This document shows, piece after piece, positions 1 to 61,148 of a stretch of DNA of 64,000 nucleotides (position 1 is its first letter; every line of letters begins with the position of its first letter). The DNA lies in NCBI GenBank assembly GCA_964036045.1, contig OZ038378.1:22568001-22632000 (forward strand), given 5' to 3'. The translations under genes were made by a program, and so were the position numbers. Under the pieces are notes generated by a model. It did not search any database. It had not been told where the DNA came from and worked only from the letters and a program-made list of their open reading frames with translations. Source of the DNA: Eutreptiella sp. 'Long Island Sound 2002'. Taxonomy: Eukaryota; Protista; Euglenida.

Positions 1-3000
1 GCGCATTTGCAAGCCATACAGTGAGCTAGAGGAAAAGTGGTCATTGTAATGGATTCCGAATATGTTTAAAAAAGTTTCACACCCGCATGCATTGCTTTTT
101 TGTTGGGATGAAACACACTAGGTGTCACGGTCCGGACCGGCACCGCATGCAGATCTTTGGAAGGTTGTGCTACGAGCGTGGCCTTGTTCACAAGCCCCAT
201 TAGGTTCCAAGTTCTAGGAAGCCCCAAAAGTACCATTGCCATTAACTTGAGGGTAAAGCTCATGTGGGAGTTTGTAGCACCTGGCCTGCTTCATCATTTG
301 CGGGTCCCACCTTCATTCTTTGAGGCTGCGGTTTTTTTTAGGATGAAAACCTCTTCTTGCCCGCCCTGTTTTATTTGACCAAGTACGTGTCCCAAAGTAG
401 GACGACATTTTGCCCCATTATATAGAACCACAACAAATCAAATTACTGACAATGAAGGATTTGCTTGAGAAGGCTCGAAAGCAAAACACCAGACAAAAAC
501 GACAGTAGGTGATGCAGCCATTTTTGTATCCACACTCCTGAGTGTAGAACCAAGGGAGCGCACATATACCTGTAATTAGTACCTTACGTCCTCCTTGTAA
601 TGCCCCCCCAACGTCGGGACGGTTCCCCCCCACAAACCATGAAGCAAGCGATACTCAGCTAAAGAAGGCCCCGCTGTCACGGGCGACTGATCATAGCTCG
701 CAATCGTTTTGCTGCACTGCAGCACTTCCAAACCAATATTGAATGTTGCCTTGAGTTCGCCCACGGGCTATCGAATGTCTCTTAGGTTGGTTTCGGTCAA
801 CTCCCTCATCTCCCTGGAGCCCGGCATGGTCAAAAACCAGTGGTGGGTCGTGACAGCACACACGCCTACGTTTCAGCCGTGACAACACACAACTTGTGCA
901 TGCCATGTTAGTCGTGGCAACACACGCTAGCTTGGGTCAACTCAACCCCCTCCCCAAAAAACCGGGTTAGGGGTCATTTACACACCGGTGACCCCATGGA
1001 TTCCTGGCTACTGCTAGTGTCCTCTTCCCGTTCGCTTGAACGATCAGTACATGTATCATCTTCATCTATGTCCAACTATGCCCAATCCTGCAATCCCCCA
1101 CTCATATTATTGTCGCTGGGCTCTTCCATCTCTTCGAGGCCTAAATCATTCCTCATGTCCCTGACCTCCCTATCACGAAGTGCTGCTCGATACGCCTATG
1201 CGGACTGGGAAGAGAGGAGCGCCAGTCATGAAAAGAAATTTTCACACGCTTGGGCTTCTACTGTTTGGAGTTCCACTGTGGGGGAGCCCTGGGGGAAGCA
1301 CAAGCCTGCACTTTGTGCACTCCACGGAGCATGCCTTCGGTTTTCAAGTTTGGTGACCGTGGCAGAGGTACAGCCTATTGCTGTAAAGCAAGTGAGATCT
1401 CTCAAAGAGCCAAAAGCTTTTAGGAAGAAACAAGAAAAAGTTATGGCTTAGGTTGCCCAACTCCGCCTTGTTATGAAGGACAGTTTTGTACCCATATACA
1501 CTGACGCCTTGTCTATCACCTCAAGGCAAGGACCCGTCGCAGGTTTTGGTGTGCACTAAAAGACCTGTGGGCTACGTGCCCAGGGATGAGCTTTAAACAC
1601 ACAACCATGTAGGACTCTATACGCATTTGCAAGCCATACAGCGAGCTAGACATAAAGTGGTCATTATAATCGATTCCACATACATTTACAACGGTTTGAC
1701 GGGTCGCATGCATCGGTGGGATGAAACACGCTAGGTGTCGCGGTCTAGTGTGGTACGGCATGCGGATCTTTGGAAGGGTGTGCTACGAGCGTGGCCTTGT
1801 CAACAAGCCCCATTAGATTCCAAGTTCTACGAAGCACCCGGAGTACCATTGCCATTAACTTGAGGGTAAAGCTCATGTGGGAGTTTGTAGCGGTTGGGAT
1901 GCTTTGTCATTTGCGGGTCCCACCTTCATTCTCTCCCAACAGCGTGGAGGGGCTCATGAAGCATGGACGGGCCTCACGTGAGGCAACCTAAAGGACGGAG
2001 GGGGGAGCCTCTTGTCATACAGGGCGGCAGCTCTCCAGAAACCCACGCGACTTGCCCCTTGGGTGAGTCTGGGGGCTGGAATGGGTAGAAGCCCCATGGA
2101 CTATTGCTCCTTAATATGATTTCCTTCCACCTTCATTCTTTCAGGCTGAGGACTTTTTGAGGCTAAAAACCTCTTCCTGCCCGCACCGTTGTATTTGAAC
2201 AAGTACGTGTCCCAAAGAAGCACGGCATTCTGCACCACAATATATAATTACAACAAATGAAACTGGTGACAATGAAAGACTGCCCTGAGAAGGCTCGAAA
2301 GCAAAACACGAGACAAAAACGACAATAGGTGATGCAACCCATTGTATATACACAATCCTGCGCGTAGAACCAAGGGAGCACACATATATGGAATGCGTAC
2401 CTTATCCTCTCCTTCTAAGGCCCCCCCAAAATCGGGACGGTTCCCCCCCCACGAACCATGAAGCAAGGGATCGTCAGCTAGTCGGCTATACGGAACGCCC
2501 CCGTGTCACAAGCGACCGGTCATAGCGCGCAATTATTTTGCTGCACCGCACTTCCAACCCAATATTGAATGTTGCCTTGAGTTCGCCCATGGGCTATTGA
2601 ATGTCTCTTAGGTCGGTTTGGGTCAGCTCCCTCACCTCCTTGGAGCCGTGGAATTGTCGAATCCCAGTGGTGCGTCGTGACAACACGCACGCGCACGTTT
2701 CAACTGTGACAACATACAACTCGTGCACGCCATGTTAGTCGTGGCAACACACGCTAGCTTGGGTCAACTCAACCCCCTCACCCAAAACCCGGTTAGGGGT
2801 CCTTTACACACCGTTGACCCAATTCATTGCTCGCTACTGCTATTGTCCTCTTCCCCTTTGCTTGAACAGTCTGTACATGTATCATCTTCATCTATGTCCA
2901 AATATGCCTCATCCTGCGATCCCCCACTCATATTATCGTCACTGGGCTCTTCCATCCCTTCGAGGCCTAAATCATTCCCGATGTCCCTAACCTCTTTGGT
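1..3000 (+). mobile_element. Two tandem decayed copies (period ~1.62 kb) of a Transib/RAG1-like DNA transposon fragment
   Basis: gcatttgcaagccataca occurs at 2 and 1623, with long colinear similarity (1-1170 vs 1620-3000). The plus strand gives broken transposase-like peptides (WDET, LEGKA, C-x3-C-GSHLH, MKDLLEKARKQNTRQKRQ) matching the inverted copy at 3445-4950. Many stops and frameshifts. Confidence 0.65.
1933..2126 (+). mobile_element. 194-bp 5'-truncated retro-insertion with 13-bp TSD
   Basis: ccaccttcattct is duplicated at 1920-1932 and 2127-2139. The paralogous transposon copies (~307-319 and inverted ~4398-4410) carry it once, as empty sites. The insert encodes ...LMKHGRASREAT* (stop 1989-1991), then 135 nt of 3' sequence. 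Confidence 0.85.
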
Positions 3001-4950: not shown

Positions 4951-5080
4951 TTTTTTGCTTCCTGCAGCCAACAGATATCTGGCCGGGGTCACAAAGTGGA
5001 CGGGCACGGTGAACGCAAAGTACGATGGGTGGACAGGTGATGAAACCTTTGCCCCCGGATTTGCTGAACCGCTCCCCCTC

Positions 5081-6547: not shown

Positions 6548-6628
6548 CCCCGGTCTGGGGGCACGCTGGGATTCTACCTGTGGGTCCTGTGCCTCCTCGT
6601 CTGCCTGGAGGGTTGTGTTAGCCACGTC

Positions 6629-9600
6629 ATGCGGCACTCACTACTCCTCGATATTCGTGGGCTCGTCATGGTGGGGGCAGGGCGCGGGATTGCATGGTAC
6701 GTGGGACCGTCACGGGTGAGGCGCCGTTCGCCCCGACGCACATGGTGGGCCCATGGCATGAGATGGGAACACCGTGGGGCGCGCATTTACCGGGTCTGGG
6801 ACAGGGGGCGGCCTTTCAGTTGGCTTGTATATAAGACGTATCTACGGGGGCACCTGGGCCCCTACAAGCCGTGGGAAGCCCTTCTACTGTTGCTTGGGGG
6901 AGACATCGAGCTCAACCCCGGGCCTTCAAGTGGTCAATGGGCTGCCGTGTATACCGCACTGAACAAGGGAGTGGTCAAGTCTGCTACCGGTTGCGCGCAA
7001 CCAAGTGGCGATGGCCTCCGGTGGGCGTCCTTCAATATTGGGGGCCCCACGGTTGATTGGGACCGATGGGTCACCATCGTACAGCTCTTGTCTGATATGC
7101 GCCTCGACATTATCGGCTTACAAGAAGTTAAGCCTACCTTTCCCGACATAGAGGCGGCAACAACATTAACCTTTCCCGAGTGGCAGATCTACTATCACCC
7201 ACACCCGTCCGGGACCGTCAATGGGGTGGCATTCCTGGTCCGCAACACAATGGACCACTTCGTGCTCAAGGACGGCAATCAACGTGCCTCGCTTTTCGCA
7301 GACCCAGACGGGACCTTTCTCGGACTTACTTTGCAGCTCCCCAACAAGCCACGGCTACGGGTCCTGAACTACTATGGACTCCAAACTGCAGCCACCAAGA
7401 AGAGGCAAGATGCCTTTGTCGAGGCACACCAATACGATGTACTCATGGGCGACTTCAACGACTCTATTTGGAGCAACACCCCAAGTCGGTTTCGGCACGA
7501 TGACCTACCGAGCCACCGTCTATACGACCCGCTGCACGAACTATGCCCCGATGGGTCTGTACAGGCGGGACACACCAGAGGGTGCCACCGCCTGGATGCG
7601 ATTCTGGTCTCTTCGCGGTGCTGGGGGATTGTTAGCCCCATGACATACCATACTGTCGCCATGCCCACCTCCGACCACCGGCTCGTCCTAATGACTACAG
7701 GCCTCACCTCCACGGACTGTGAGTCCTTTATCAAAGCCACGCACCCTGCCAAGAAGTGGAATGTGCGGCAAGAGCGAGCCGCCGTGCACGAGACACAACG
7801 CATACTCGCCGGGCAAGACACCCCAATGGACGCAGTATCACGCGCTGATGCGGTCCTCAAAGCGGTGGCGCAGGCCGTCATTCGACAGGGGAAGCGCACC
7901 AAGCGGACCCGTCTCAAAACTAACACACAACAGTGGCACAAACACTTCCAAGTGGTCAAGAAGCGCATCGCGCAGGAACTGCGCGAAGTGGCCAACAAGC
8001 GCCTCTATACCATGCGTCATGCAGCCCTCCGCAAGGATGGGGCATTCTTCCGCTTGACCAAAAATTGGACCCGCGGACCATTGAAGCCCACGCAAAAGCA
8101 ACCCAGTCCGGACCTGGCGCGCGCTTTGCTAGCCAACTTCAGTGGCAACCCCCCCTATGACATGGCGGCCATTGAAGCACTCATCCCACAACTCATCCCA
8201 CAGGGGCACATGACTGACGACCCACCAAGCTTCGATGAGTTCAAAAGGGCATGTATGGGCAAGCGCAAGAAAGCCGTGGGCCCCGATGGGGTTCCGCACC
8301 GCTTGCTGGGCATGCTGCCAGACGATACGCTGCACACATTGTATGAGGGGGCGCTAGAAGTATGGAGAACAGGAGACATCCCGCAGCATTGGCTGCGGTC
8401 TGAGGTGGTGTTGATGTACAAGAAAGGGGATCCTGACCGCCCCGAGAATTATCGACCCATTGCCGTGACCAACAGTATATATCGTGTTATCATGAAGTTG
8501 TACAGGCCCCGCCTGCAGCGCCTTGTGGACCGGGTTGCTAGCCCCGAGCAGTATGGGTCGAGGCCTTTGCACACCGCAACTGAGCAAGCTGCAAACTTAG
8601 TCAACTCCCTCCACGAGCACGAAATGGAGGGCCGGGAGCCTTTTGTGGTTTTGTTGGATGTTGCCAAAGCCTTCCCGTCCACAATCCATGAAGCCATTTT
8701 CTCCATCCTGAACCATGCCGGGCTCCCGCCGAACTATGTGAACGCCTTCCGCACGATCTATGCACATACTGACACATACACGGACATACAAGGAGAACGG
8801 ATATACTTCAAGCCCACGCGGGGCGTCAAAGAAGGATGCCCCTGCTCCCCGCTCTTGTTCGCTATTGTATATGAGTTGTTGATCAAGCGTTTGATCGCCA
8901 AGTACCCGGACACATTCGTTTATGTTGACGATATTGCCATCATTGTCAAAGATCATTCTGAATTGGAACGACTCCTCACCGACCTCTCCGCTTGGGGGTC
9001 CCAGATTGGGATTCAGTTCAATCCTAACAAGACAGAAGTGTATCACTTCCACAGACCACGGTCCTCGGGCGCTACCTCAGGGGGTGCCCAGCAGGCAACG
9101 CACATCTGGTGGGGACAACATCGCCTCGACTTCAAGGATCCCATGTTCACCTACTTGGGCCACACCATCGCCGGTGTAGGGTATAGGGGCAAGGCTAGGG
9201 ATGCGCTCTTCACCGCCCTGCAAGCTCAGGTAGCCGCATACACCATCCTCCCGTTGACAAGCTTTGAGCGGGCACAAATCGTCAATTCCGTACTCATCCC
9301 CAGGTGGGTGTATAAGAGTCTCTTTATGTGGGATGTGTGTTGGGGCAACCGCATGGAGACCGCCTTCGAAGAGTTTGTCCTTCAGGCTCCCCGCGTGGAA
9401 AAGTACCTGCAGTACCGCCTCTACACGGACGTCACCGAAGGGGGACTGGGCCTCCACAGTGCGTCCTGGGCCGGTTTATGCGCCCTTATTCAGCTAGTCC
9501 AACGGGCCTTGCGAGTTCCACACAGGCCTATGACGAGGCGCACCAACTCAGGTCATCTCCCACACATGGTGGAGAAGTACCGCAAAATCCTGCTGTCCTT

Positions 9601-11758
9601 TGGTATGGAAATGGGGCGCCTCCCACGCGCCGGCCAATCGATAGGTCGAAAGGCACCCAAACGGGCCCACGATGACCTCGAGTCACTCTTCGATGATGAG
9701 GACTCCGACGATTGCAGGTTTGAGTCGCTTGTACCCCACCAGTACCTCCAATCCCTGCGTCCCAAGAGCGGCACTAGTCCCGTGCAACCCAACGTTGAGC
9801 AATCAGGCCGTGCCTGGCACCAACAGGGGCAACCCACGGGGTCGACGTGGTACAGTGACGGCAGCCTGTTGGAAGGGCGTGCTGGCACAGGGGTGGTCAA
9901 CGGACCTATGCGCATCCAAGCGAGAGTACCGGGCCCGCAGACGATTTATAGGGCAGAAATGTACGGCATATGGATCGCGGCGTGCCTAGCCCAACCGGGG
10001 GACTCCATCGTGCTTGACAACCGGGCTGCGGCTCGATGCGTCTCCAAGCCACCCAGCCCACAATCGTCCGACTATGATTTGCACGACGCAGCGTACCAGC
10101 TTATCTCCACCAAGGCACTCCAAGTACGTTGGGCACGTGGGCATCGGGACCCTAAAAAGGCGCATAGTTTGCAAGATTATCAGGACAGGATTGGCAACGA
10201 ATTAGCCGACCTCGCAGCCCGAGCGGGCAGTACCATGCACCCTTGCCGTGGTCTGGGCAGCACATCACCCGCGGATATCCTCTTGAACGGCCATGTAATG
10301 CCGTCCCCTGCCCGTAAGTGGATCATCAAATCACGCCCCCAGAAGCTGGTACACGAGGCGCATTGGACGTCATGGCTGCCTTTGCGCGCGGTCAACCGAG
10401 ATAAGTGGGGTCCATGGCTGTGGGGGACACTGCGATTGCCGGGGTATGGGGCACCCTGGGAAACCGGGCCGGTGCTGTGCCCACGGTGTGGACAGCGCCA
10501 TGGCCTTGCAGTGCAGGAGTGCCTCTTGTCATGCCCCTCCGAATCCCGGTTTTGGGACATTTGGACCGACGCATGGGAGACATGGAAACCGGAGGCAACC
10601 AAGTGGCGACGAACGGCGTCCGCAGACGAACTGCGCATGTGCACCCGCTTGCAGTTCCCACACTCCCTTCAACGATCCTTCCTTCCAGTCCAGGCGCACT
10701 GGAGGGTGGTAGTTGCCACATGGCACTTCCACGTATTCCAGCGATTGCAGGCGTGGGTCGTTGACAAGCTGCAGCACGCCCCAACTTTCGTCAGCAACAA
10801 GCGGCCCACGCACATTGTCCCACCTGTTGCTGGGGCCCTGCCGCAGGTAGCTAAACCTACGGCCCGCAACATCTGGAACCACGTGAGAGGCGTACTGTCG
10901 ATCCCGCCGCCATCAGAGCCACGTTTCACAGATACTGCGCCCACGGTGGAGGAACTTCGGTGGCAATTGACACAAGCGGTCACCACTGCCGAGCGCACGT
11001 GGGTCTTGGAGGCCATGGCCCGGCACCACCATGTAGCACCGCCGCGCAAACGGCCCAGAGAACCGTCGCCGCCACCGGCACAGGCTCCGGTCTCACCGCC
11101 GCGCGAGTCTCGTGAAATTCATGCCGGACCCTTCCTGGAACAGGCTAGGCGTCTCATGCTACACGCCCAAATGCAGGCCGCACGACTCTGCCTGGAAGAG
11201 GTGGCGCAGGCACTCGCCCGGCAAGCCGTCACACAGAAGTCCCTCTTCTTGGCACACCACCACGAGCACTTGTGCCGGCAAGCGTACTTCCTCTACAAGG
11301 AACATACGACGCGGTGGTATGTAGAAGCGCAACAGGCGGTCTACCACTTGTCCTGGATGGCGGATTCTCGCCGACTACGCTTCCGCCAGTGGCGAACAGC
11401 TGTCCTCCCCGAGGCGCGGTCCACGGTGTCGCGCAAGCTCGCCGTGGCATCCTCGTGTTGGGAGCAGGGACATGTTTCGCTGTCCACCGGCATCCAAGCG
11501 GAAGAAGCATCCGAATGGCGGCATATGTCCCAAGTGCACGCGGTGACCCTTACGGCCTTACGGCGGACGACTTTGTCGGACCCCCGATGGGACATCCGGG
11601 GGGCCACCGCACAGCGCATGAAGCGCTTGCGGGACGAGAACCCACCCGAGACACACAAGAAACGGAGGACAGAGGCGCCGGAGGTTCCTAGTGATCTCCA
11701 GGATATGGAAATCCCGCTGGAGGACATGGGCGATGTCATAGTCTTGACTGGATTGTAA
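6629..11758 (+). CDS. LINE A ORF2, 1709 aa: 2A peptide, APE endonuclease, reverse transcriptase, RNase H, Cys/His knuckle
   Basis: APE motifs SFNIGG, GLQEVK, GDFND, RLDAIL, SDHRLV. RT motifs YRPIAV, LDVAKAFPS, GVKEGCPCSPLLF, YVDD (8921-8932). RNase H motifs YSDGS, RAEMYG, GHRD, GNELADLAA. CPRCGQRH knuckle. Confidence 0.97.
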   Translation: MRHSLLLDIRGLVMVGAGRGIAWYVGPSRVRRRSPRRTWWAHGMRWEHRGARIYRVWDRGRPFSWLVYKTYLRGHLGPYKPWEALLLLLGGDIELNPGPSSGQWAAVYTALNKGVVKSATGCAQPSGDGLRWASFNIGGPTVDWDRWVTIVQLLSDMRLDIIGLQEVKPTFPDIEAATTLTFPEWQIYYHPHPSGTVNGVAFLVRNTMDHFVLKDGNQRASLFADPDGTFLGLTLQLPNKPRLRVLNYYGLQTAATKKRQDAFVEAHQYDVLMGDFNDSIWSNTPSRFRHDDLPSHRLYDPLHELCPDGSVQAGHTRGCHRLDAILVSSRCWGIVSPMTYHTVAMPTSDHRLVLMTTGLTSTDCESFIKATHPAKKWNVRQERAAVHETQRILAGQDTPMDAVSRADAVLKAVAQAVIRQGKRTKRTRLKTNTQQWHKHFQVVKKRIAQELREVANKRLYTMRHAALRKDGAFFRLTKNWTRGPLKPTQKQPSPDLARALLANFSGNPPYDMAAIEALIPQLIPQGHMTDDPPSFDEFKRACMGKRKKAVGPDGVPHRLLGMLPDDTLHTLYEGALEVWRTGDIPQHWLRSEVVLMYKKGDPDRPENYRPIAVTNSIYRVIMKLYRPRLQRLVDRVASPEQYGSRPLHTATEQAANLVNSLHEHEMEGREPFVVLLDVAKAFPSTIHEAIFSILNHAGLPPNYVNAFRTIYAHTDTYTDIQGERIYFKPTRGVKEGCPCSPLLFAIVYELLIKRLIAKYPDTFVYVDDIAIIVKDHSELERLLTDLSAWGSQIGIQFNPNKTEVYHFHRPRSSGATSGGAQQATHIWWGQHRLDFKDPMFTYLGHTIAGVGYRGKARDALFTALQAQVAAYTILPLTSFERAQIVNSVLIPRWVYKSLFMWDVCWGNRMETAFEEFVLQAPRVEKYLQYRLYTDVTEGGLGLHSASWAGLCALIQLVQRALRVPHRPMTRRTNSGHLPHMVEKYRKILLSFGMEMGRLPRAGQSIGRKAPKRAHDDLESLFDDEDSDDCRFESLVPHQYLQSLRPKSGTSPVQPNVEQSGRAWHQQGQPTGSTWYSDGSLLEGRAGTGVVNGPMRIQARVPGPQTIYRAEMYGIWIAACLAQPGDSIVLDNRAAARCVSKPPSPQSSDYDLHDAAYQLISTKALQVRWARGHRDPKKAHSLQDYQDRIGNELADLAARAGSTMHPCRGLGSTSPADILLNGHVMPSPARKWIIKSRPQKLVHEAHWTSWLPLRAVNRDKWGPWLWGTLRLPGYGAPWETGPVLCPRCGQRHGLAVQECLLSCPSESRFWDIWTDAWETWKPEATKWRRTASADELRMCTRLQFPHSLQRSFLPVQAHWRVVVATWHFHVFQRLQAWVVDKLQHAPTFVSNKRPTHIVPPVAGALPQVAKPTARNIWNHVRGVLSIPPPSEPRFTDTAPTVEELRWQLTQAVTTAERTWVLEAMARHHHVAPPRKRPREPSPPPAQAPVSPPRESREIHAGPFLEQARRLMLHAQMQAARLCLEEVAQALARQAVTQKSLFLAHHHEHLCRQAYFLYKEHTTRWYVEAQQAVYHLSWMADSRRLRFRQWRTAVLPEARSTVSRKLAVASSCWEQGHVSLSTGIQAEEASEWRHMSQVHAVTLTALRRTTLSDPRWDIRGATAQRMKRLRDENPPETHKKRRTEAPEVPSDLQDMEIPLEDMGDVIVLTGL
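6866..6925 (+). other. 2A-like ribosomal skip (StopGo) peptide, PWEALLLLLGGDIELNPG/P
   Basis: Exact D(V/I)ExNPGP consensus at 6902-6925 with a hydrophobic upstream helix, just before the APE domain. 2A-like sequences are known at this position in APE-type non-LTR elements. Confidence 0.85.
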
Positions 11759-16955: not shown

Positions 16956-16994
<39 letters not shown>

Positions 16995-17020: not shown

Positions 17021-17077
17021 CTGTAGCTTTCCATGTGGAGTGGCTTCCCAGACATCTGTCCATGCGCAGGAGACAGC

Positions 17078-17556: not shown

Positions 17557-18858
17557 GTACTGCTCCACCACCAGGCGCAGGGCAAAGGATGCCAAGGGCC
17601 ACTCCCACACACACTGTGGCCCCGCAAGTAATCGGGTCCACACAGGGAGAGGCCCAAACTGCCCCCCCAGAAAGGTGATGTATCTTAGCGAACGCTATAA
17701 AGCTGTTTCAAAGAAAGGTCATCAGACCCGATAAACTGCCGTCAGTAGGATGGTAGGAATGTTGAACCACACAGTTGGAGTATGATTGAATGATGGCCCC
17801 GGCACATACATGTCGGAGCAAAAAAAAACCTCTCATGGGGAAACACCATATTTTCGAAGGAAGCTCGTATGGGTCTGTGGATTTGGGAGCGTTGCTAAAA
17901 GGCCCATAGCTCAGGGCTGTGCAACCTGTCCTGGGACGCAGTTACCCAGCATAACAATTGGGCCCCAGTGCCTTTACCCTCCCCTGAGCAAGGAGAGGGG
18001 TAGCTTAGGTGCATTCTGTTCCTGGCTCCACCTGGTGCCCTCTGAGGCATCGTTGTTTCACTTGCCGCATGGAGGGGATGCTATCCTTGATGCCACGTAC
18101 ACCCATTGTGAAGCACTGCCGGCCCCACAGCAGGGCTTTGGTAGGATGACCACCCACTGCCTTGTGTCCCGCAGCAGGGTTTGGTGGGAGACACACCCAC
18201 TGCACGCTGCACGGGCGGTGAATCCCTGAAACAACTAGCAAAATGCCTCAGCAGACCGCGCACCACTGATGGGTAGCACTCGGTGATCTGGAAGCCCCTG
18301 GCCCTATGTTACATTTTCCACCTCAGTGGTGCCGAGCACCTTTCAAACTCCGCTGTCTTGGGAAAGACTTCATTTGGAGCATGCCAGCGCCAGCATGGGA
18401 GGGATGCCAAGGGGCAGAAGCAGCACTTGTGAGCACCGGGACAGCTGTACTATTCTCATGTAGTAAAAAATTTCCCCCAGCTGTTCGGTAGCCCAACAGG
18501 ATCTCATCTCTCACAGTTTTTATAAACTTTTCCTCTTTACCCCCAACCCAACAGGTGGGCAACCAACCCACCTACCCACAAGTGGAGGATTCCCTTCTCA
18601 GAAGGCGCCCACGTACGTTCACTTGGAAGTACCAACTGGCATGCTCTCTCAGATGTTATGGCACATATGCACAAAGAAACACACACACACACACACACAG
18701 GTGTTTTCTTTGGTGCCTGCCAGCCGGGGACACTGCATATCCAACCGAAAGCCAAACAGGCACGCTCATCAGCGCAACAACCCCCGCCAGGGCTGCACTC
18801 GCCCCCCCCCCTGGGCCTGTGAAACCGCTGCTCGGCACGACCCCCTGGGTCACACAAA

Positions 18859-20655
18859 ATGTCGGGCATAGCCCAAGATCTGCTTGATGCACTTAAGCAG
18901 CCAGAGGTGCTGCAAGCTATGGCTAACGCCATCGCACCACTTCTCAGTGGCAAGAAGCAGGCTGCGTCCAGGGACACGGAGCAAAGCGGCTCTGCGCGGG
19001 AAGAGCATCTACTGGAGGTCATCAGGAGTCTCAAGGACACCATCAGGGAGCTGAGGACAGCTCTCCAGGCTGCGAACACCGATCAAACAGCACCAAGTGC
19101 TCGGGAGGTCGCGGCAGAGAAGGATATACGATCTTCGTACAAGGCAGCTCTTCTGAAGAAGACGCCTGGTAAGAGCCAAGTCGTAGTCAAGGAGGTTCAA
19201 GATTTGGGAGACCCCCTGCAACCAACGGGACTGGCAGTCAAGGCCCTCAAAGGCAAGCATACCTTCACAGCAGTGCAGGGGAAGAGACTATACAAGGGAG
19301 ACAACAAATCACAGCTTGACATGAAGCAGATTGGCCCCAGTAAAGCGGTTTCTGATTGGAAGGTGTCAGCAGACACCGAGGGAGCTTTTGCGCATGTGCT
19401 TCTGGTTGGGCAGCAGGTGGCTGAAGCTCATTTCATTGCGACACAGGCGATGTCACAGCATGCGTGTATCTGCAGTGTCAGTGCACATGTCCTAGCTACA
19501 GGCAGCAAACGGAACGATGCCTCTGTTCACGGAATTCTGACGGCATTGGGCAGATCGAGGGACAGCCTCACCATCTCTGGCATGACGCTCAGCGTAAAAG
19601 TCATCACGCAACGTATGGAGTGGGAGACCAAGAAGGATGCGGACGTAAAAATGACGCCGCCTGAGCACTCGCTGCTGCTTTGCTGGGAACGCTCTGGCGA
19701 GGGCACTGAAGATGCAGATCATGAGCCAGTGGACCTGCCGCAGGATAAGGCGGCGGTCAGAGTTGTTTGCTGTTTGGACCCGACCATCCTACAAGTCACT
19801 GGTGAAGACAATGCCAAAATGAAGGCTGCCCGATGGGCAGAAGAGAAGTGCTGGGAGCTTACGTCCCCATACCTCACCCCCACGCTTACACCCCCCCCCC
19901 CTATGCAAGTGGGAAAGAGGGGCTCAAAATACGAAGTAACCATGGTGCTGCCAGCTCCTATGGTGAAACAGGTGCTTTGCAATGGCGGAAAAGTGACAGG
20001 AGCTGAGTACCGCCTTTTCATGAATAAAGATACCGATGTGGACACACTCAAAGCAAACATGGTATGGGTCAAACTTCCCCAGAACACAAACAAAGCCATC
20101 TCCGATCATTGGAAAAGATTACACAAACAACCGTGGTTTGCAGGCCTCATCGCAGGGGACCGTGCCGACCGCCTGGGAGTGCGAGTTTGGGGCGGGCCTG
20201 TCATCCCTGACACACGGCAAGAAATAGCTACACTGCTTGGTATCCTTCTGACCCCCCCTGTGACCCGGGTACGCGTCAGAGGGTATGGTGTTTCAATGGG
20301 TCTGGTCTCAGGCCAACAATCGGCTGCACAGCGTGAAGCCGACAGAGTTTTCGGCGCGAACATTGTCACTGTGATAAGATGCCAGCACCTGAAGCACAGT
20401 GGTCTGGTGTCGCCAGTTTTTGACATGGATATAACGGGCATCCCCCCAGATTGGGAAGGGTGCACAGTTCCTGCGCAGGATTCCCGGATGCCCGTGCGGA
20501 AATGGCACAAGTGCATCCGCAAGGCTACTGCCCCCACGTACAAGCCAGTAGGCAAGCGTGCCACCCTACCCCCCCGACAGGGATGTGTGACGCCAGAGGA
20601 TGAGGAAATGCCGGAAGAGGCAGCCAAGGACGAGGAGGGTGAAGGCATCCTCTGA
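18859..20655 (+). CDS. LINE B ORF1, 598 aa (coiled-coil N-terminus)
   Basis: Intact ORF ending 5 nt before the ORF2 ATG at 20661. Its position and helical N-terminus are typical of LINE ORF1. Confidence 0.8.
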   Translation: MSGIAQDLLDALKQPEVLQAMANAIAPLLSGKKQAASRDTEQSGSAREEHLLEVIRSLKDTIRELRTALQAANTDQTAPSAREVAAEKDIRSSYKAALLKKTPGKSQVVVKEVQDLGDPLQPTGLAVKALKGKHTFTAVQGKRLYKGDNKSQLDMKQIGPSKAVSDWKVSADTEGAFAHVLLVGQQVAEAHFIATQAMSQHACICSVSAHVLATGSKRNDASVHGILTALGRSRDSLTISGMTLSVKVITQRMEWETKKDADVKMTPPEHSLLLCWERSGEGTEDADHEPVDLPQDKAAVRVVCCLDPTILQVTGEDNAKMKAARWAEEKCWELTSPYLTPTLTPPPPMQVGKRGSKYEVTMVLPAPMVKQVLCNGGKVTGAEYRLFMNKDTDVDTLKANMVWVKLPQNTNKAISDHWKRLHKQPWFAGLIAGDRADRLGVRVWGGPVIPDTRQEIATLLGILLTPPVTRVRVRGYGVSMGLVSGQQSAAQREADRVFGANIVTVIRCQHLKHSGLVSPVFDMDITGIPPDWEGCTVPAQDSRMPVRKWHKCIRKATAPTYKPVGKRATLPPRQGCVTPEDEEMPEEAAKDEEGEGIL

Positions 20656-20660
20656 GTTTC

Positions 20661-23600
20661 ATGCATTTTTCAGGACGGCAACCCAATACAGGTCCTCTCC
20701 AATTTGTAAACACAAATGTCACGTCATTACGTGTGCACCACGAAGATGTCTTTAGTTTTAAGGCTGATGTGGTCGGGATGCAAGAGACCCGTCTAACGGC
20801 ATCAGGCCAGCGCTGCATGTAGGCAATTGCAGCAGAATATGGCTGGTCATGTTTTTGGGGGAAACCACTGGGCTCGCCCACGGGTGGGATCTGGGGCGCC
20901 CCTCAAGGGGGGGTTGGAATGTTGTTCAAGAAGGGATGGAATGTACGCCAAGTGGAGGCGGACGAAGGAGACCCCATTGCCAGCAGACTCTGGCATTCCG
21001 GCAGATGGCTGCACACATGCGCAGGCATCGGTGAAGGGCACACTGTCCTGAACATATGCGTAGCATACGGCATCCCGGCCAATGCCCCGCTGAACACTGA
21101 ATTCTGGGAGTTAGTCATTTGCTATCTCAGCAGGCTGGGAACCTCCCCCTGCCTTCTATTTACAGATGCGAACTTCAATTTCGATGTCTTTCATAAAATA
21201 CCTGCAGCCCCCCTTACTGCATTAGCAGATGGCTGGCTCGTAGATGCAGACCATGTATTCGCCACACTGCTCCAGATTTCCTGTGTCAGCAATTTTTCTA
21301 AGGATGGTGCCCCTGGAACTCGCATCGATGCACTGCTGGCCACGCCTGCTCAGGTCTCAGCACTTGTTGACGTCTCTGCTGTGCAGGGACATTCCCTCCC
21401 AGGCCACACGCCGGTACGATATACCTTTGCTCTGGATGGCCCAAGACAGAAAGTTATCAAGATGAGGAAGCTCCCCCCCTTTTCACTGCCTCCGCGAGAG
21501 GTAGAAGAGGCACAGGAAATAAGCGACATGCTGCCGAAGCCTTGGGAAACGTGGGCAGCCCTGGTCAGTGAAGGGAATGTCAATGCCATCTGGGATCAGT
21601 GGACTTGGCTAGCAGAGGAAGTGGGGGTCGTACTCTCATGCAATCACCTCACAAAGGATAGCCTAGGGGCCGCCCTCCCATTCGCACCTAAGTCTGCACC
21701 CCGTGGCAGAGGGACAGCACAGATGTTGCGAGAAACTACTCTGGCCCCAAGCAAAACAACTGCATATGGGGGGCCACGCACTCGGCTGATATCCAAGATC
21801 ACCGGTGCCCTGGGATCACTACGCACAGTCATCCAGTGGCAGCGAAAGGAGGCGGGTGTCCAGGGTAACCGACTCACAGCGTCTGCGAGGCGCAAAGCAC
21901 AGAGAGCCGTCCGATTGGGCGCTGTGCCGCAGCAGGTACAACACGCGTGGCAAGCGGCGTGCCGGCGTATGCGTAAAATTGGCGCGGCGGTCAGAGATGA
22001 CTTACTGCTACAGGACTTCATTACACTGGCCCCGGACCCCAACCTCCCCCCCATCCGTCAGATGCCAACCCTGGTCCAGACCATGTCTGAGTATGACCAG
22101 CTCTGTACATTAGGCAGGAAGTACGCTAAACAGCAAGAACGTGATCCAATAGAGGCATGGAAGCACAAGATGAATCAAGCCTGGTTGGACAGGCCAAAGG
22201 ATGTATACCGTTGGATTCAAAATGAATATCAACCCCCCCTTGTCATGCTGTTGGATCCGGAGACACAACAACCCACCTCCAGTGTGAATAGAATGGACGA
22301 CATTCTACATGCCTCATGGGACAAAGTAATGAGGAAGTATGCGCATGCCCCAGAGCCGGATGCGGCCGCCTTTGTCCGCAAATACGGGGTTTTTCTACAG
22401 CGCGGTCGGCTCATGCAAGCCGCTCCCATCACAGGCGCCCGACTCACCAAAAGGTTCAGGAAAATGGGCATCCATACAGCCACCGGCCTTGACGGCTGGT
22501 GCGTCGCCGACTTGCTATCGCTGCCCATGCAGCTGATGGATATGCTAGCAGAACTGCTGCACGTCATCGAGCACACAGGACAGTGGCCTCAGGCCTTGGC
22601 CAAAGGGTATATTTCGCTCATTCCTAAGGGCGAGGGCATGTTGCCCATGCAACAACTCCCGCTCTCCGTGTTATCCCAAATTTACCGAGTCTGGGCAGGG
22701 ATTAGACTAGAGGAATGCATGCTGTGGCAAGAGGGGTGGATTCACCCACATGCCTTTGGTTTCAGAAAACGAAGAGGGGCCACAGATGCGGCGGCGCTCA
22801 TCGCCCTGCTCGTGGAGCTCCACAAAATTATCAAATCTGTCCTGCACGGTTTCGGACTTGACTATGTCAAGTGTTTTGACTTGATACCGCAGTCCATTGT
22901 ACTGCACATTGCCCTGGAACAGGGCATGAATCCAGGAACCCACCGAGCCCTTAAGGGCATGTATACATCCCTGGTAAGATGTTTCAAAATCATGGGCTGC
23001 TGCGCCAGTTTCTTTGCGGCCACAAATGGCATATTGCAGGGATGCCCACTTTCAGTCATACTGATCAATTTGATGACTAGTATCTGGAAACGGGTCCCTG
23101 GCCGGTGTCTTGTAGCCATTCCTCCGTGCGTTGCAAAAGGGGGGTCAGGGGTGTGCCTCCCGCTGCCAGCCCATAGGTGTCGTCAGCATAACCAAGCGAT
23201 GTGAGTATAAAGTGCAGGACCTGAACTGGCTGATCCCCAGGGGGGAGCGCGCGCGCTGACACCGACAGGTGCTGTTTTTGGGCATCCAGCAGTGTCAATG
23301 CCAAAAAGTCCGTGGGGTTCTCCTCATCCTCATCAGAGCCAGTGAAGGCAGAACTGCTGGGTGTGCCTTTCCCGGTGGAAACAGAGTTTAGGTCGCTGGG
23401 TGCAGGCATTCGCACAACCGTTGCCACGTGCTCAGGCCCGCTAATCCTGAAGCACATATCTCGTGCCTGCGGCCTCCTTGACCGTGTGCATGGAGCCCAG
23501 GGCAATTATGAACGCCGCTGCGAGATCATATCAACTATGATCACAGCCACAGGCCTACATGCATCGGAGATCGTCCCACTCCGTATGCGGGATCTCGCTA

Positions 23601-25769
23601 CCTTCGAAACCCGCGTCATTAGAACTATCTGGGGCCCTACACGCCCAGGGAGGGCAAAAGAAAATTTCTTTTCCTTGCTATGCAAAGGCCACCGGATTTC
23701 TCCACCCATGGTGGTCAAGTACTCACGCCTGCTTTGGCTGTCGCATCTTTGCCGGAACAGGGGCCCAAACCAGATCACTGCCCAGGCCATCTGGGAAACA
23801 GGATTATACACAAGAAACAGCGGCCCCTTTGGGCGCGCAGTGCAAACAGCACAGGAATGCGGCTGGGCGCCTATGCAGGGTTGGTGGGGCTGGAAAGTCC
23901 CAGGGCAGAGTGAACCCCTTATGTTAAATGGGGACAAACAGACTGTAAAACACGAAGTCCGCGAACAGCTTAGGAAGCAATTGTTAGTCTCGTTACTCCA
24001 ACGGCGACCTCGCCTGTTTGCGGGTCTGCACTATGCCACAAACAGGCAACTTCTACAGCCGAGCATTGCCAGCTTTGGGTCCGAACTAGAGCGGACCATA
24101 TTGAGAGGGGTTCTTTCTGGAGCGACCTGGACCGCGCTGCGCGCGTATCAACGTGGCCTTCGCACCTCCTCCGCATGTCCTTTTTGTAATGCGTCCCCAG
24201 AAGATGAGGAACATATCCTCTGGCATTGTGTCGCGTGGGACCACGTCCGTGACCCGCTGTTGGCGCTTGTGCACACGGCCCTTTCCCAGGTGCCGGAGCT
24301 TCCACCACCCGGCCAGTGGCCGGCATGCTTACGGCGATGTGGTTTAGCCCCAGAAATTTCCACAGAGGCAATAAAATCTGGTGCAGCTTTCACCTTCCTG
24401 CGCGCGGTACACTCCATGTTTGTGTGCATTATAGCAGCACGCAAAAAGCGAGATGCGCACAGCCCTTCCATCTTTGCAGGGTACAGACTGTCTCAACAAG
24501 TCAGGCAATACCCCTATCAACAACTGGTTGGGCCACTGCCCCAAACGGTGGCACACGGTGCCTTGACACTCCGCACCCCCAAGGGGCATGAATGGAAGTG
24601 GGAAAAGAGCTTTCTCGCGGACCTACTCGGTTGGCTACGAGCCCTGACGTGGCCGGAGGAACCGGGGACAGTCACCTTTTTGGAACTAGCAATTGATTTC
24701 GAAGAGTTCGCGCAAAGGACCCTCCCCCATGCGCCTCAGGCGAAGTATGCAGGACATACCCTGTCCCTCCAAGAACGAGGCAGGGTACTGCGTTTGGCAA
24801 TGTCCAGCGCTCAGCGACTGGTCACCTCAGGCCAGCTGCACCCAGCCGGCATGGTGACCCGCTGTGGCTCGCTTGTGCCGCTGGGGGGACCGGCGATCTG
24901 CGGTTTAAATAAACGCCCGTATTTTGCACGCCGAGAGGCCATGATTTCACACATCCGCAAACTCGTTCAGTATTGCGAAGAGCAGTGGGTGGCCAAGGCG
25001 GGAACACACCGCACACATGCGCTGCGCCCATACACATACCGCCCGCGTAAGACAGCGGCAGAGATTGAAGCACATAGACTGCACAGAGCCCTGTGCGGGA
25101 ACTTGCAGACAGGCCTGGCGCCAGCATCTGGTGCACAGCTCACAGCTCACAGACTTTTTCCCCATCATCGGCGCCGGTCGCTTGCCACAGCGCCCATACA
25201 CAGGAACACGCAGGCACGTACCAACAACAGCACAGGCACACGTAAACAGGGCGCCAACAAATGCCACTGTATGTGACACACACTCTCTACCGGCGTGCAT
25301 CACGTGCAAGAGGCTGCGCAAAACAGCCCAGGAGTGTTGCTCTTTGGGGCATCACGAAGCGGGGCACGTCCCTCGCCGCCCGCAACTACAGCTCTGTGAG
25401 GCCCACAGACTGCCGCCGTGCCCCATTTGCGCACGCACACAACGGGGGGTAAGGCACTGTTGTGCAAGGGGGCATCACAAAGTGTGCACCCCAGTCCAGC
25501 CATCCAGGAAGCGTTGCTCCTCTCAACAGCCGAAGCGTTCATATAAACGCCCACGAGTTGGGCCTTCACAGACAAGTCAAGCCTCTTTGAGGTCTCCACA
25601 CCAACCCCCAACGCCTCCCGCCCCCAAGCGGCGGAGGCCCAAAACGCCATCCCCGCCCTCCCCACCAACCCCTGTTCCACAGGGGCTGGTAGAGACGCCG
25701 GATACGGAAGCAATCTGCCGCCAGCTCTTTCTGGGGGCACGCGGAAGGGCCAGCTCCGAGGTTACCTAA
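20661..25769 (+). pseudogene. LINE B ORF2 (APE endonuclease, RT, CxxC..HxxxxC finger, twin Cys/His repeats), disrupted
   Basis: APE: NTNVTSL, GMQETRL, TDANFN, TRIDAL. RT: LDYVKCFD, GILQGCPLS. Finger: CPFC..EHILWHC. Lesions: TAG at 20820-20822, inversion 23095-23291 containing YADD, frameshift near 25140. Ends GRASSEVT*. Confidence 0.9.
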
Positions 25770-26056
25770 CCGTACACACACAGAGGTTCTGATTCCGCAG
25801 AAGGGATGGATCACAGGCGCAAAGAGGCAACAGCAGACTGAGCCGAATACACCTGCCATCTCATGGCTGCATAAGGATCTACCTCGTAAAAAGTACACGC
25901 TCTTTTTCTGGCGCCTTGACCGTGGTTGGGCGCTTACCCACAAAATGCCAGAACCGGCGGTCTCTCGGCGTTGAGGGCTACCCACGGCCCCCTGCCAGGG
26001 CCGAGACCCGCGCCCTCACGTCGCGGGCGGCCGCGGCTTCCGCGGCAAGTACCCCG

Positions 26057-28870
26057 ATGGGGGACCAGACCGCGGCCCTCACCGCGGCCCTCACCGAGGC
26101 CATCGTCGCGGCGTTGCAGCCACTGCTACAGCGCACCCCGTGGGGGGACCCCCTCATAGCGGAGGACTCCGATCAGGGGGGTTGGATACGCGATGGAGCC
26201 CAGTACTATGGGGAGGAGTACTTCTGGCTGCCCCCGGGGCAGACTCCGCGACAGTGGCGAGAAGTACATCGTCAAATGCGCGAGCAGCAGCAGCTTCACG
26301 CGAAGGAGGTCCAGCCCCAGCTCGAGCCCGACGAGGGTGCCGCGGCAGCAACGGCGGCGGCGGCAGTGCTGGCGGCGGCAACGTTGGCAGCCAAGGCGGA
26401 GCTGGCTATTCAGCAAGCGGTCGAGGACGAGGAGGCTATTGTGCACATCGCGCGTGCCGGGGCCCAGCCAGGGCGAGCGGCCGCCACGGCGGAGTGGCCG
26501 GAGCTGCCGGCAACATGCGTGCCCCCGCCCACGACGCCCTCCCGGGGCGAGCCGGGCCGGAGGGCACAGGGGCGAGCCCGCGCCAGGGCGCGTCGAGCGG
26601 TCGCGTCGTTGGCAGCGGCGTCCACGGCGGCAGCAACCGCGGCAGCAGTGGCAGCGGCAGCGGCCATCGTCGTGTCGGTCTCGGACACGACACCGGAGGC
26701 GGCATCGGCAGCCGGCGCTGCCCTGGACCACGAGGAGTCGACGGCGGCAGCGCACAACGGTCTGGGCCTCATCGAGCAGGGGGCCATGGTATGCCTGCAG
26801 CGCACTGACCCACTAGGCCTGTGGGGCCCAGTGGGGGCATGGGCGGATGAGCCCTGCCCCCTGTATGGCAAGCTGGAGGTGCAGGCGGCGTCCCCCAGCG
26901 CCCAGGACGCCACCTGTGACTTTTTGGGCAGCCCGCAGGCTGCCAATGGCGCTGTCTGTGGCGCTACCGGTGCGCCTGGGGCTGGAGGGGACGCATCCCC
27001 CAGCGCCCAGGACGCCATCTGTGCCTTTTCGGGCAGCCTGCAGGCTGCCAATGGCGCTGTCTGTGGCGCTACCGGGGCGCCTGGGGCTGGTGGGGACGCA
27101 TCCCCCAGCGCCCAGGACGCCACCTGTGACTTTTTGGGCAGCCCGCAGGCTGCCAGTGGCGCTGTCTGTGGCGCTACCGGGGCGCCTGGGGCTGGTGGGG
27201 ACGCATCCCCCAGCGCCCAGGACGCCATCTGTGCCTTTTCGGGCAGCCCGCAGGCTGCCAATGGCGCTGTCTGTGGCGCTACCGGAGCGCCTGGGGCTGG
27301 AGGGGACGCATCCCCCAGCGCCCAGGACGCCATCTGTGCCTTTTCGGGCAGCCTGCAGGCTGCCAAAGGCGCTGTCTGTGGCGCTACCGGGGCGCCTGGG
27401 GCTGGTGGGGACGCATCCCCCAGCGCCCAGGACGCCACCTGTGACTTTTTGGGCAGCCCGCAGGCTGCCAGTGGCGCTGTCTGTGGCGCTACCGGGGCGC
27501 CTGGGGCTGGTGGGGACGCATCCCCCAGCGCCCAGGACGCCATCTGTGCCTTTTCGGGCAGCCCGCAGGCTGCCAATGGCGCTGTCTGTGGCGCTACCGG
27601 AGCGCCTGGGGCTGGAGGGGACGCATCCCCCAGCGCCCAGGACGCCATCTGTGCCTTTTCGGGCAGCCTGCAGGCTGCCAAAGGCGCTGTCTGTGGCGCT
27701 ACCGGTGCGCCTGGGGCTGGTGGGGAAGCATCCCCCAGCGCCCAGGACGCCACCTGTGACTTCTCGGGCAGCCTGCAGGCTGCCAATGGCGCTGTCTGCG
27801 GCGCTACCGGGGCGCCTGGGGCTGGAGGGGACGCATCCCCCAGCACCCAGGGCGCCATCTGTGCTGACCCCCCGGCCCTTACCCACTTATCTGGGTTTCC
27901 TGGGGGGAGGGGGGTGGAGGTGGTCAGGACCAGCCCCCCCCCCTGCCTTGCGTTGACCCAATGCCCTGGGGCATCCGGGGGCTGCATTGTTTTTGAGGAA
28001 GTCTTTCAGGGAGGGGGGAGGCAGCAGGAGATGCTGGAGGATGAGGTGTGCACCCGTGCGTGCATAGAGGAGCTCCAGGTGGCGACGTTGGAGCTCCTGA
28101 TGGGTAGTTTTCGGGAGGGGGGGCTGCGCCTTTCTGCCCCCCCCTCCCCCATCAATTTATGCCCTAATCCGCCCCCGGGCCGCCTGCCCTGTGCGGCGCC
28201 CTGGGGGTCAGATTCTGTTTCATCTGGCGGGGGATGGGGCCTCACCCCCCCCCTCCACTGCCCTCGCCCCAGCCTCCTGCCCCCCAGACCACGGGGCCAG
28301 GGGAGGGGGGGCGTGGCGGCTCTGCCACCATCTTTGAGAGGGCCATTGGCCCAGCCCACCAGCGGTGGGAACGGAGGGGCCCTGCCGGTAGCCAGAGCCG
28401 CCGGCCTCCCCGTGAGTGGTGGGGCCCAGCTGGCTTTCGTTTCTGCTAGCCCAGTGATGTCACGGGCTAGGGAACCCCCCCCGTGCGATCCGAGCCCGCA
28501 CTCAGGGCACAAGGTGCGTACATGGGGGGAGGGGGATCACAATCACCCCCTCCCACAGGTGCATCCAGCAGCTCCAGCGCTGGAGCTGGGGCAGTCGGTT
28601 TCCGCAACCGCCAGCCCGGAGGAGGTTCATGTGGGGACGTCGGCTTCAACCGCCGCCGGCCCTGCGAAAGAGGCGTGGGGGGTGGGGATTCCGGATCGCC
28701 CCCTCCCCCCTTCGTGGCCGCAGGCAGCGGCACGGGCGGTTCTGGGGCACAGCCCAGGAGGGGGGCACGCCCCCCCAGCAGGAGGCAAGGAGGCGCCGGC
28801 TCCGGCGCATCAGGGGGGCAGCAGGGTGCCGGTGATGGTGCACGGGAGAGCCTCAAGTGAGGTGACCTAA
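26057..28870 (+). CDS. Ala/Gly/Pro-rich protein (~937 aa from MGDQ; frame open from 25916) with nine-plus 35-aa repeats, ending HGRASSEVT*
   Basis: The frame is intact across the element. Complex N-terminus (WIRDGAQYYGEEYFWLPPGQTPRQW). No RT, EN or integrase motif seen. Confidence 0.65.
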   Translation: MGDQTAALTAALTEAIVAALQPLLQRTPWGDPLIAEDSDQGGWIRDGAQYYGEEYFWLPPGQTPRQWREVHRQMREQQQLHAKEVQPQLEPDEGAAAATAAAAVLAAATLAAKAELAIQQAVEDEEAIVHIARAGAQPGRAAATAEWPELPATCVPPPTTPSRGEPGRRAQGRARARARRAVASLAAASTAAATAAAVAAAAAIVVSVSDTTPEAASAAGAALDHEESTAAAHNGLGLIEQGAMVCLQRTDPLGLWGPVGAWADEPCPLYGKLEVQAASPSAQDATCDFLGSPQAANGAVCGATGAPGAGGDASPSAQDAICAFSGSLQAANGAVCGATGAPGAGGDASPSAQDATCDFLGSPQAASGAVCGATGAPGAGGDASPSAQDAICAFSGSPQAANGAVCGATGAPGAGGDASPSAQDAICAFSGSLQAAKGAVCGATGAPGAGGDASPSAQDATCDFLGSPQAASGAVCGATGAPGAGGDASPSAQDAICAFSGSPQAANGAVCGATGAPGAGGDASPSAQDAICAFSGSLQAAKGAVCGATGAPGAGGEASPSAQDATCDFSGSLQAANGAVCGATGAPGAGGDASPSTQGAICADPPALTHLSGFPGGRGVEVVRTSPPPCLALTQCPGASGGCIVFEEVFQGGGRQQEMLEDEVCTRACIEELQVATLELLMGSFREGGLRLSAPPSPINLCPNPPPGRLPCAAPWGSDSVSSGGGWGLTPPLHCPRPSLLPPRPRGQGRGGVAALPPSLRGPLAQPTSGGNGGALPVARAAGLPVSGGAQLAFVSASPVMSRAREPPPCDPSPHSGHKVRTWGEGDHNHPLPQVHPAAPALELGQSVSATASPEEVHVGTSASTAAGPAKEAWGVGIPDRPLPPSWPQAAARAVLGHSPGGGHAPPAGGKEAPAPAHQGGSRVPVMVHGRASSEVT
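26888..27862 (+). repeat. Coding tandem array, 9+ x 105 bp (ASPSAQDAxCxFxGSxQAAxGAVCGATGAPGAGGD)
   Basis: Period 105 (tcccc at 26891, 26996...). Units 3-5 and 6-8 form a 315-bp higher-order duplication. Confidence 0.95.

Positions 28871-61111: not shown

Positions 61112-61148
<37 letters not shown>

Follow-up and report, generated by a model that had tools for sequence, protein, structure and literature searches.

Why should three retroelement insertions that look unlike one another end their open reading frames (ORFs) in nearly the same peptide? The question is raised by a stretch of 64,000 nucleotides from the euglenid Eutreptiella sp. 'Long Island Sound 2002' (contig OZ038378.1, positions 22,568,001 to 22,632,000), which we call the window. 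In it a long interspersed nuclear element (LINE B) and a 3.1-kb element without recognisable enzymes, hereafter the passenger, both finish in GRASSEVT, and a 194-bp insert finishes in GRASREAT, in each case directly before a stop codon. An earlier note, made from the letters of the window, took the three insertions to be unrelated and suggested that the passenger elements mimic a peptide on which selection acts. We find that the three insertions descend from one clade of LINEs and that purifying selection acts on the amino-acid sequence of the peptide. We consider it probable that peptide and stop form the conserved extreme C-terminus of the ORF2 protein (ORF2p) of a single apurinic-endonuclease (APE)-type LINE clade, that the three insertions carry the 3′ module of this clade, and that the passenger has the peptide mainly by inheritance.

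Results

Three ORF ends and their chance expectation

The three ORF ends are located as follows:

25743-25769, + strand: LINE B, GRASSEVT-stop, exact as a string and in translation
28844-28870, + strand: passenger, GRASSEVT-stop (28841-28870 with the preceding His codon)
1965-1991, + strand: 194-bp insert, GRASREAT-stop (1962-1991 with the preceding His codon)

Coordinates, letters and translations of these 27-nt strings agree exactly with the earlier note. LINE B and the passenger differ at 9 of the 27 nucleotides with no amino-acid change, and the differences include exchanges between the two classes of serine codons (AGC/TCA and TCC/AGT). Calculated from the six-frame residue frequencies of the window, GRASxExT-stop is expected 2.6e-4 times in six frames over the whole window, against three observed occurrences, and it was absent from all of 300 first-order Markov simulations.

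Selection acts on the amino acids

An exhaustive phmmer search with the last 250 residues of LINE B ORF2 returned 85 relatives of this C-terminus; about 20 of them extend to the end of the query, and nearly all of these finish in HGRxxxxxT, with the consensus VxRPLF-x3-HGRA[ST][ST]E[IV]T-COOH. We tabulated 18 ORF ends from 13 sources. Besides those of the window, they come from 12 more loci, which belong to the same or a near genome, and from four other marine metagenomes, unrelated samples represented by a Logan run, a Tara Oceans assembly and two further metagenome assemblies. Counted back from the stop codon, the most conserved positions are:

Position -9: His in 17/18 (CAC, CAT)
Position -8: Gly in 18/18 (GGA, GGG, GGC)
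Position -7: Arg in 18/18 (AGG, AGA, CGG, CGC, CGT)
Position -6: Ala in 16/18 (four codons)
Position -5: mostly Ser (both TCN and AGY)
Position -1: Thr in 16/18 (ACC, ACA, ACT)

The majority base accounts for a fraction of 0.78, 0.85 and 0.51 at codon positions 1, 2 and 3, respectively. Summed over all pairs, the proportions of synonymous (pS) and nonsynonymous (pN) differences are 0.79 and 0.075 for HGRA, and 0.76 and 0.28 for all nine codons. The stop codon is TAA in 16/18 and TAG in 2/18 of the ends, and the base that follows it can be A, C, G or T without preference. As third positions are near random while the first two are kept, and as pN/pS is low (0.09 for HGRA across the 18 ends), we conclude that purifying selection acts on the amino-acid sequence of the peptide. 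Selection on a C-terminal peptide at the stop codon had been proposed in the earlier note, together with a codon-level comparison as a check, and that comparison bears the proposal out, Arg and Ser codon classes being swapped freely. It also holds that the peptide is present in an autonomous element (LINE B) as well as a non-autonomous one (the passenger).

A 3′ module shared by the three insertions

LINE B and its parts are arranged as follows:

18679-18700: (CA)n, 5′ flank of LINE B
18701-25897, + strand: LINE B, a full-length copy with frameshifts, recognised from its ORFs, from Pfam RVT_1/zf-RVT and from a 5′ junction that recurs in locus L006
18859-20655, + strand: ORF1
20919-25769, + strand: ORF2, fragmented
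25740-25769, + strand: terminal codons R-GRASSEVT-stop, the first of which is His (CAC) in the consensus (G for A at 25741)
25770-25897, + strand: 3′ untranslated region (UTR), homologous to that of relatives through to the tail
25782-25792, + strand: box AGAGGTTCTGA, palindromic CAGA-GGT-TCTG, 13-23 nt after the stop
25877-25897, + strand: 3′ tail ATCTACCTCGTAAAAAGTACA; relatives end in CCTC.T.A.AGTACA and then (CA)n

The start of LINE B at 18701 directly abuts (CA)n, and L006 has the identical junction and 5′ end. At the other end, a 10-nt target-site duplication (TSD, ACACACACAG) and with it a 3′ UTR of 4 nt, as in the earlier note, were accepted at first and then rejected: the supposed duplication lies inside a UTR segment (CACAGAGGTTCTGA) that relatives also have. 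Since in these relatives, found on long contigs of an ENA assembly (same or near genome), the same post-stop segment runs for about 128 nt to the tail and then into (CA)n, we place the UTR of LINE B at 25770-25897, that is, 128 nt.

When the sequences flanking the three sites were aligned locally as nucleotides, nothing significant emerged beyond the motif, and to this extent the dissimilarity of flanks and UTRs described previously stands. The homology is detectable because relatives were compared and not the window copies alone. It consists of a common box some 13-21 nt after the stop and a common 3′ tail, so that the UTRs are not unlike throughout and the insertions cannot be called unrelated. 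The module opens with the peptide and stop, followed by a spacer of some 12 nt whose sequence is not conserved. Next come a GAGGYTCT box and a variable stretch of about 100 nt, and the module closes with a tail of the CTCGTTAATAGTACA type, behind which (CA)n follows; across the clade the tail is of the form CTC(G)TTAATAG(TACA). Because all three insertions carry this homologous module, the sharing of the peptide is explained by common descent: LINE B, the passenger and the 194-bp insert descend from one LINE clade, and neither convergence on the peptide nor its mimicry by unrelated elements is supported. Members of the clade insert into (CA)n microsatellites, where they form arrays in head-to-tail order; the clade has many subfamilies here and relatives in several marine metagenomes.

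The box lies at about the same distance from the stop in every LINE relative. LINE B-like copies have CAGA-GGT-TCTG, the Tara copy has TAGA-GGC-TCTA and a third family CCAGA-GGC-TCTGG; box-like variants are GGGA-GCC-TCTT in the 194-bp insert and AGGAC-GGC-GTCCT in a relative of the passenger. In most of the 18 copies the box is centred on +16; the others have it at +10, +15, +18 or +19, apart from two of the 18 in which the scan settled on another site. If the box is read as a hairpin, 87% of the cells pair, and covariation is modest. When the 46 nt that follow the stop were folded thermodynamically, the z-scores were unremarkable. Because energy-based folding does not single it out, we treat it as a conserved box, which may form a small hairpin, rather than as a firm hairpin. 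The steady spacing across a spacer of free sequence suggests a length constraint between ORF end and box and is compatible with a coupling of ORF end and UTR; alternatively, the spacing was inherited without insertions or deletions.

The C-terminus of ORF2

The window copy of LINE B is degraded, as is evident from the His to Arg change at 25741 and from frameshifts between 20655 and 25276. Base 25741 is G in the window and A in every contig of a related organism's run, and the relative P0003 ends in AHGRASSEVT. Another relative, P0053, aligns over 538 residues to the RT-side ORF of LINE B (RT, reverse transcriptase) and, without a change of frame, runs on into the first zinc motif, which shows that the tail is the true end of ORF2 and that the window copy is merely frameshifted. 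RVT_1 is found in the degraded copy at E=1.3e-6, just below the gathering score, and PF00078 is carried by the relatives P0108, P0109, P0111 and P0112; the solved structures closest to the RT are LINE-1 ORF2p and R2. For an endonuclease, Pfam gives no match at E<=1 in LINE B's own copy; in P0113, a homologue of 37% identity, PF03372 (E=2.4e-12) precedes RVT_1. From N- to C-terminus, ORF2 is laid out as follows:

1: putative endonuclease, on the basis of the 37%-identical homologue P0113
2 and 3: RT, then a zf-RVT-like motif
4: two CxxH-x4-CxxC-x9-CCxxGHH zinc-binding motifs (25272-25355 and 25395-25478, + strand)
5 to 7: proline-rich linker with KRRRPK, acidic stretch, terminal motif

We ran AlphaFold2 on the last 250 amino acids (aa) of LINE B ORF2 with 43 aligned sequences. 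The zinc domain was modelled with a predicted local distance difference test score (pLDDT) of 82-92, the last 20 residues reached about 51, and the tail was not docked on the zinc domain in this model. The terminal peptide is thus predicted to end a disordered, proline-rich linker that follows a tandem zinc domain. The KRRRPK stretch in this linker (25626-25643) is kept across relatives (PKRRRP in the alignment consensus), shows a local rise in model confidence (pLDDT 72-81) and looks like a nuclear localisation signal.

Because the other LINE of the window (6629-11758) has a different C-terminal ending, the motif is specific to the clade and not general to retroelements. Searches of the relatives of the RT piece and of the ESM Atlas identified no named LINE clade, and a string search of the literature for the peptide matched only 'switchgrass', the two longer strings being absent from the listed papers, with no paper found that quotes the motif. 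Among known short motifs, the conserved positions fit none of the PIP-box, APIM, RVxF, 14-3-3 mode III and LC8 patterns. A class I PDZ-binding C-terminus ([ST]-x-hydrophobic-COOH) was rejected, the last residue being Thr in 16/18 and the hydrophobic residue standing at -2, and so was the cyclin RxL pattern, which RPLF fits in the LINE copies only and not in the passenger or the 194-bp copy.

The passenger

The passenger lies directly behind LINE B:

25898-29009, + strand, with a second tail copy up to 29026: 3.1-kb element, non-autonomous and ORF-bearing, head-to-tail at the LINE B tail
26057-28870, + strand: ORF of the passenger from its ATG, about 940 aa
26891-27864, + strand: tandem array of a 105-nt unit within this ORF, 9.3 copies, 94% alike
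From 28871, + strand: 3′ UTR
29006-29026, + strand: tail copy, then GATC(AC)n

The tandem array encodes a 35-aa repeat with two Cys, and the number of repeats varies, giving proteins of 815 to 980 aa. The ORF has no Pfam match, and BLASTP against LINE B ORF1 and the ORF2 C-terminus found similarity confined to the last 8 aa. With its length of 3.1 kb and its ORF of about 940 aa, the passenger does not resemble a short interspersed nuclear element (SINE), no search for an RNA polymerase III (Pol III)-type head having been made.

Our search for further copies returns long products only and the sample is therefore biased toward intact ORFs. It contains at least 12 copies with long intact ORFs, 10 of which end in HGRASSEVT. 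Compared with two other copies, the passenger differs at codon positions 1/2/3 by 2/2/10 and 15/15/33 substitutions, and 44-79% of the codon differences in such comparisons are synonymous, which suggests some coding constraint in the passenger lineage. A second passenger lineage (L002 8857-9150) has a near-identical UTR and an ORF end that is, by eye, much more diverged; it ends in HGRASEEGT-stop (L002 8963-8992), where the changes are only synonymous or fall at two variable positions. The variable residues of the passenger, SSEVT, equal those of LINE B, whereas LINEs with the consensus tail of the passenger end in TQEIT or STEIT. We therefore rejected the idea that the passenger strictly mimics the peptide variant of its driver: passengers follow LINEs with other variants.

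The 5′ ends of the two elements may be common as well. Both are T-rich (LINE B, TTTTCTTTGGTGCCT, 18701-18780; passenger, TTTTTCTGGCGCCT, 25898-25977), and there is a weak co-linear match at positions 34-74, which 48 of 2000 shuffles equalled or exceeded in score (p ~0.02).

Tails, arrays and (CA)n

Within the window LINE B and the passenger have the end ACCTCGTAAAAAGTACA in common, and elsewhere both end in CCCTCGTTAATAGTACA. The 17-nt sequence taken for a TSD of the passenger is LINE B's own tail, homologous to the tail of the passenger family, and was rejected as a TSD. The earlier note had given each element its own TSD; this holds for the 194-bp insert, where an empty paralogous site exists (305-319), and does not for LINE B or the passenger. 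Since the window passenger carries the local tail variant of LINE B and not the consensus of its own family, the junction fits reverse transcription primed by homology on an existing tail, which would have duplicated this target.

Truncated 3′ pieces of the passenger family stand behind LINE tails in L001, L002, L003, L006 (three in a row), L011 and L012, and on a contig of the related organism the tail of the passenger is joined to a passenger 5′ end. On these grounds, we describe the arrangement as head-to-tail arrays inside (CA)n microsatellites. Stretches of (CA)n lie on both sides of the array in the window (18679-18700, 5′ of LINE B, and 29027-29050, 3′ of the array) and flank copies in L002, L003, L004, L005, L006, L007 and L009; the 194-bp copy is the exception. 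LINEs of the clade and the passenger family are seen head-to-tail within (CA)n in the window, in L002-L006, in L011 and in L012; between LINE and (CA)n there can be as many as three truncated 3′ pieces of passengers, all of them with a tail at the end. In L011 (1330-1340) and L012 (2815-2825) the starts of the truncated pieces agree to within 1-2 bases and correspond to a UTR position (GTCCTTCCGCCG...) some 17 nt downstream of the stop. Target-primed reverse transcription is indicated by the TSD and empty site of the 194-bp copy, by the truncated 3′ pieces in six loci, and by read depth in the related organism's run, which increases toward 3′ ends as 5′ truncation predicts.

The 194-bp insert

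1933-2126, + strand: 194-bp insert, a 5′-truncated copy of a third subfamily
1962-1991, + strand: motif HGRASREAT-stop
2003-2013, + strand: box-like GGGA-GCC-TCTT
2107-2117, + strand: tail-like CTCCTTAATAT
1918-1932 and 2126-2139: TSD of 13-15 bp (empty paralogous site 305-319)

The insert contains no more of the ORF than its last 19-20 codons and is for this reason a truncated longer element and not a small coding element. Tails resembling its own (CTCTTTAATAT, CTCTATAATAT) occur in L001, L002 and L008. Within the first 3000 positions of the window, sequence is duplicated locally at a period of about 1.6 kb: ~230-420 is found again at 1843-2230, and the duplicated segments differ mainly by the 194-bp insertion.

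Other observations

A fourth string resembling the motif is found outside the three insertions:

61572-61598, + strand: HGRASTEET without a stop, abutting a 13-nt tandem array

It is followed immediately by about 12 copies of the 13-nt unit CATTTGGTGTCAA (region 61572-61760); neither box nor tail was recognised at this string, whose chance expectation we estimate by hand at ~6e-5. An ORF on the minus strand (61072-61638) overlaps it. Upstream of the LINE pieces in L001 there is a different retroelement (850-5310), which is long terminal repeat (LTR)- or DIRS-like; its gag-like ORF contains two CCHC knuckles, and its RT has a YADD motif. In the small RNA-sequencing runs X6, X7 and X14, no reads were placed on the region.

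Discussion

We favour the reading that the nonapeptide is the conserved C-terminus of ORF2p and that derivatives of the LINE, the passenger included, received it with the 3′ module. As we picture it, the nonapeptide would serve ORF2p as a short linear motif at the junction of ORF and 3′ UTR, and may there provide a docking site for a partner or for the nearby RNA box as the ribonucleoprotein assembles. The passenger retains the ORF end, the box-like hairpin and the tail, and would become attached to a LINE tail by homology-guided priming; its peptide would come mainly with the inherited module, possibly reinforced by the same requirement.

Several points weigh against this reading. The clade cannot be placed among named LINE clades, the 4-bp hairpin of the box is thermodynamically weak and in LINE B is not the minimum-energy fold, and, the last 8-9 residues aside, the body of the passenger has no homology to a LINE protein that we could detect. 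The UTR of the passenger between box and tail is also unlike that of LINE B, and because body and UTR differ in this way, the descent of the passenger's module from a LINE rests on short islands, namely peptide, box-like hairpin and tail. The second passenger lineage, moreover, hints at selection inside passengers beyond pure inheritance, which as a single comparison it is not enough to establish.

The peptide could be functional only in the ORF2p of autonomous LINEs and a neutral relic in the passenger and the 194-bp insert, a possibility that we take seriously while finding it doubtful. The 194-bp insert is indeed a dead, 5′-truncated copy, and passenger copies are young (up to ~98% identical), with a motif whose rate of change is as low as that of the codons around it; that passengers end in SSEVT, unlike the TQEIT and STEIT of LINEs having the passenger's consensus tail, points the same way. 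A deletion derivative would not, on the other hand, be expected to hold some 940 codons in frame with a relic, the substitutions between passenger copies are enriched at codon position 3, and the second passenger lineage has kept H-G-R-A-S, T and stop next to strongly diverged sequence. If RNA or DNA were conserved, as an RT recognition or priming site over the ORF end, the peptide would be a by-product, and we regard this as very improbable. The three window copies do have GAGG-NN-ACCTAA in common, from which an additional RNA-level constraint (gaggNNacctaa) had been proposed, and the ORF end adjoins a conserved UTR box. The supposedly invariant string is, however, restricted to the window copies; many relatives read GAA ATA ACA TAA in their last four codons and others have further variants, so the constraint vanishes once relatives are added. 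The codon table contradicts this reading: in the 18 copies it is the first and second positions that are conserved, third positions being near random and Arg and Ser codon classes interchanging. A search for GAGGNNACCTAA that tolerated one mismatch showed no enrichment in the window (5 found vs 2.8 expected).

Alternatively, the passengers could depend on the peptide during translation. The last nine residues, still in the ribosome tunnel, would then pause termination at a fixed distance upstream of the box and so load ORF2p onto the RNA, in cis or, for passengers, in trans. We think this unlikely, and give the same low standing to its wider form, in which nonapeptide, stop and a box about 12 nt downstream make up a portable unit that marks or pauses the ribosome, couples RT to RNA and must be kept by passengers. 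It would account for the conserved residues all lying within 9 aa of the stop, for a stop that is nearly always TAA, for a stop-to-box distance held at ~12-15 nt over a spacer of free sequence, and for an ORF of about 940 aa, unlike that of a LINE, having the identical end in frame in at least 10 copies; the second passenger lineage, which keeps the core peptide through synonymous changes, would fit as well. Set against this, the base after the stop shows no preference, and the last position has neither Pro nor another residue typical of known arrest peptides. Spacing and peptide could both be plain inheritance, the intact passenger copies were chosen by the length filter of the search, and the motif in young copies shows no extra constraint.

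As far as a limited literature search goes, three features appear to be undescribed: a conserved module that extends into the ORF to include a C-terminal peptide of nine residues, the near-fixed distance of this peptide from a UTR box, and a long ORF-bearing partner that ends in the same peptide. Cis-preference and its exploitation by passengers are understood mainly for the poly(A)-dependent L1 and for the 3′ stem-loops of L2-type elements. If the ordinary reading holds, that of an ORF2p docking motif inherited by derivatives, the peptide is a diagnostic signature for annotating the family and offers a short, mutable target for retrotransposition assays. Were the peptide necessary in the passenger too, it would point to a translation-linked step in trans-mobilisation, and a portable unit would amount to a peptide-encoded basis of cis-preference and of its hijacking.

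Comparison with known systems

Ribosome arrest peptides that act at termination include those of human cytomegalovirus (hCMV) uORF2, the fungal arginine attenuator peptide (AAP) and TnaC. As in these, a short conserved peptide stands immediately before a stop here and its sequence is kept across different upstream protein contexts; unlike in these, the stop context is unconserved and there is no sequence resemblance; the likeness is one of layout only.

Internally deleted LINE derivatives that retain both ends are known from trypanosomatids (RIME/ingi, NARTc/L1Tc) and as half-L1. Like RIME with ingi, the passenger keeps the 3′ end and, weakly, the 5′ end of a LINE (p ~0.02) and would depend on LINE enzymes. 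It differs in that its interior is unrelated, coding-like sequence with a 35-aa tandem repeat and not a simple deletion, and in that only about 9 ORF2 codons are recognisable.

Among APE-type LINEs, several are specific to microsatellites, such as MinoAg1, which inserts at AC repeats, and Waldo, Kibi, Koshi and Dong (reviewed in PMC3812793). The clade described here resembles these in having (CA)n on both sides of copies or arrays in the window, L002-L006, L007 and L009. It is unlike them in that new copies also join existing tails by homology, which produces head-to-tail arrays, and in that the 194-bp copy sits at a site other than (CA)n.

A parallel in organisation is with LINEs of the stringent type and their partner SINEs, which have a common 3′ tail, as in eel UnaL2 and zebrafish ZfL2 (PMC1636434; PMC4176376). 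In both cases an autonomous LINE and a non-autonomous partner end in one short 3′ tail, the 3′ UTR contains a small conserved element, copies are 5′-truncated and repeats follow the tail. The tail-binding region of ZfL2 is located between endonuclease and RT (PMC4176376) and not at the C-terminus, where the peptide reported here is found. In further contrast to the partners of UnaL2 and ZfL2, the partner here is a 3.1-kb element with an ORF of about 940 aa rather than a SINE derived from Pol III transcripts, and the shared module does not stop at the UTR but reaches into coding sequence, the last nine codons of which are kept as a peptide.

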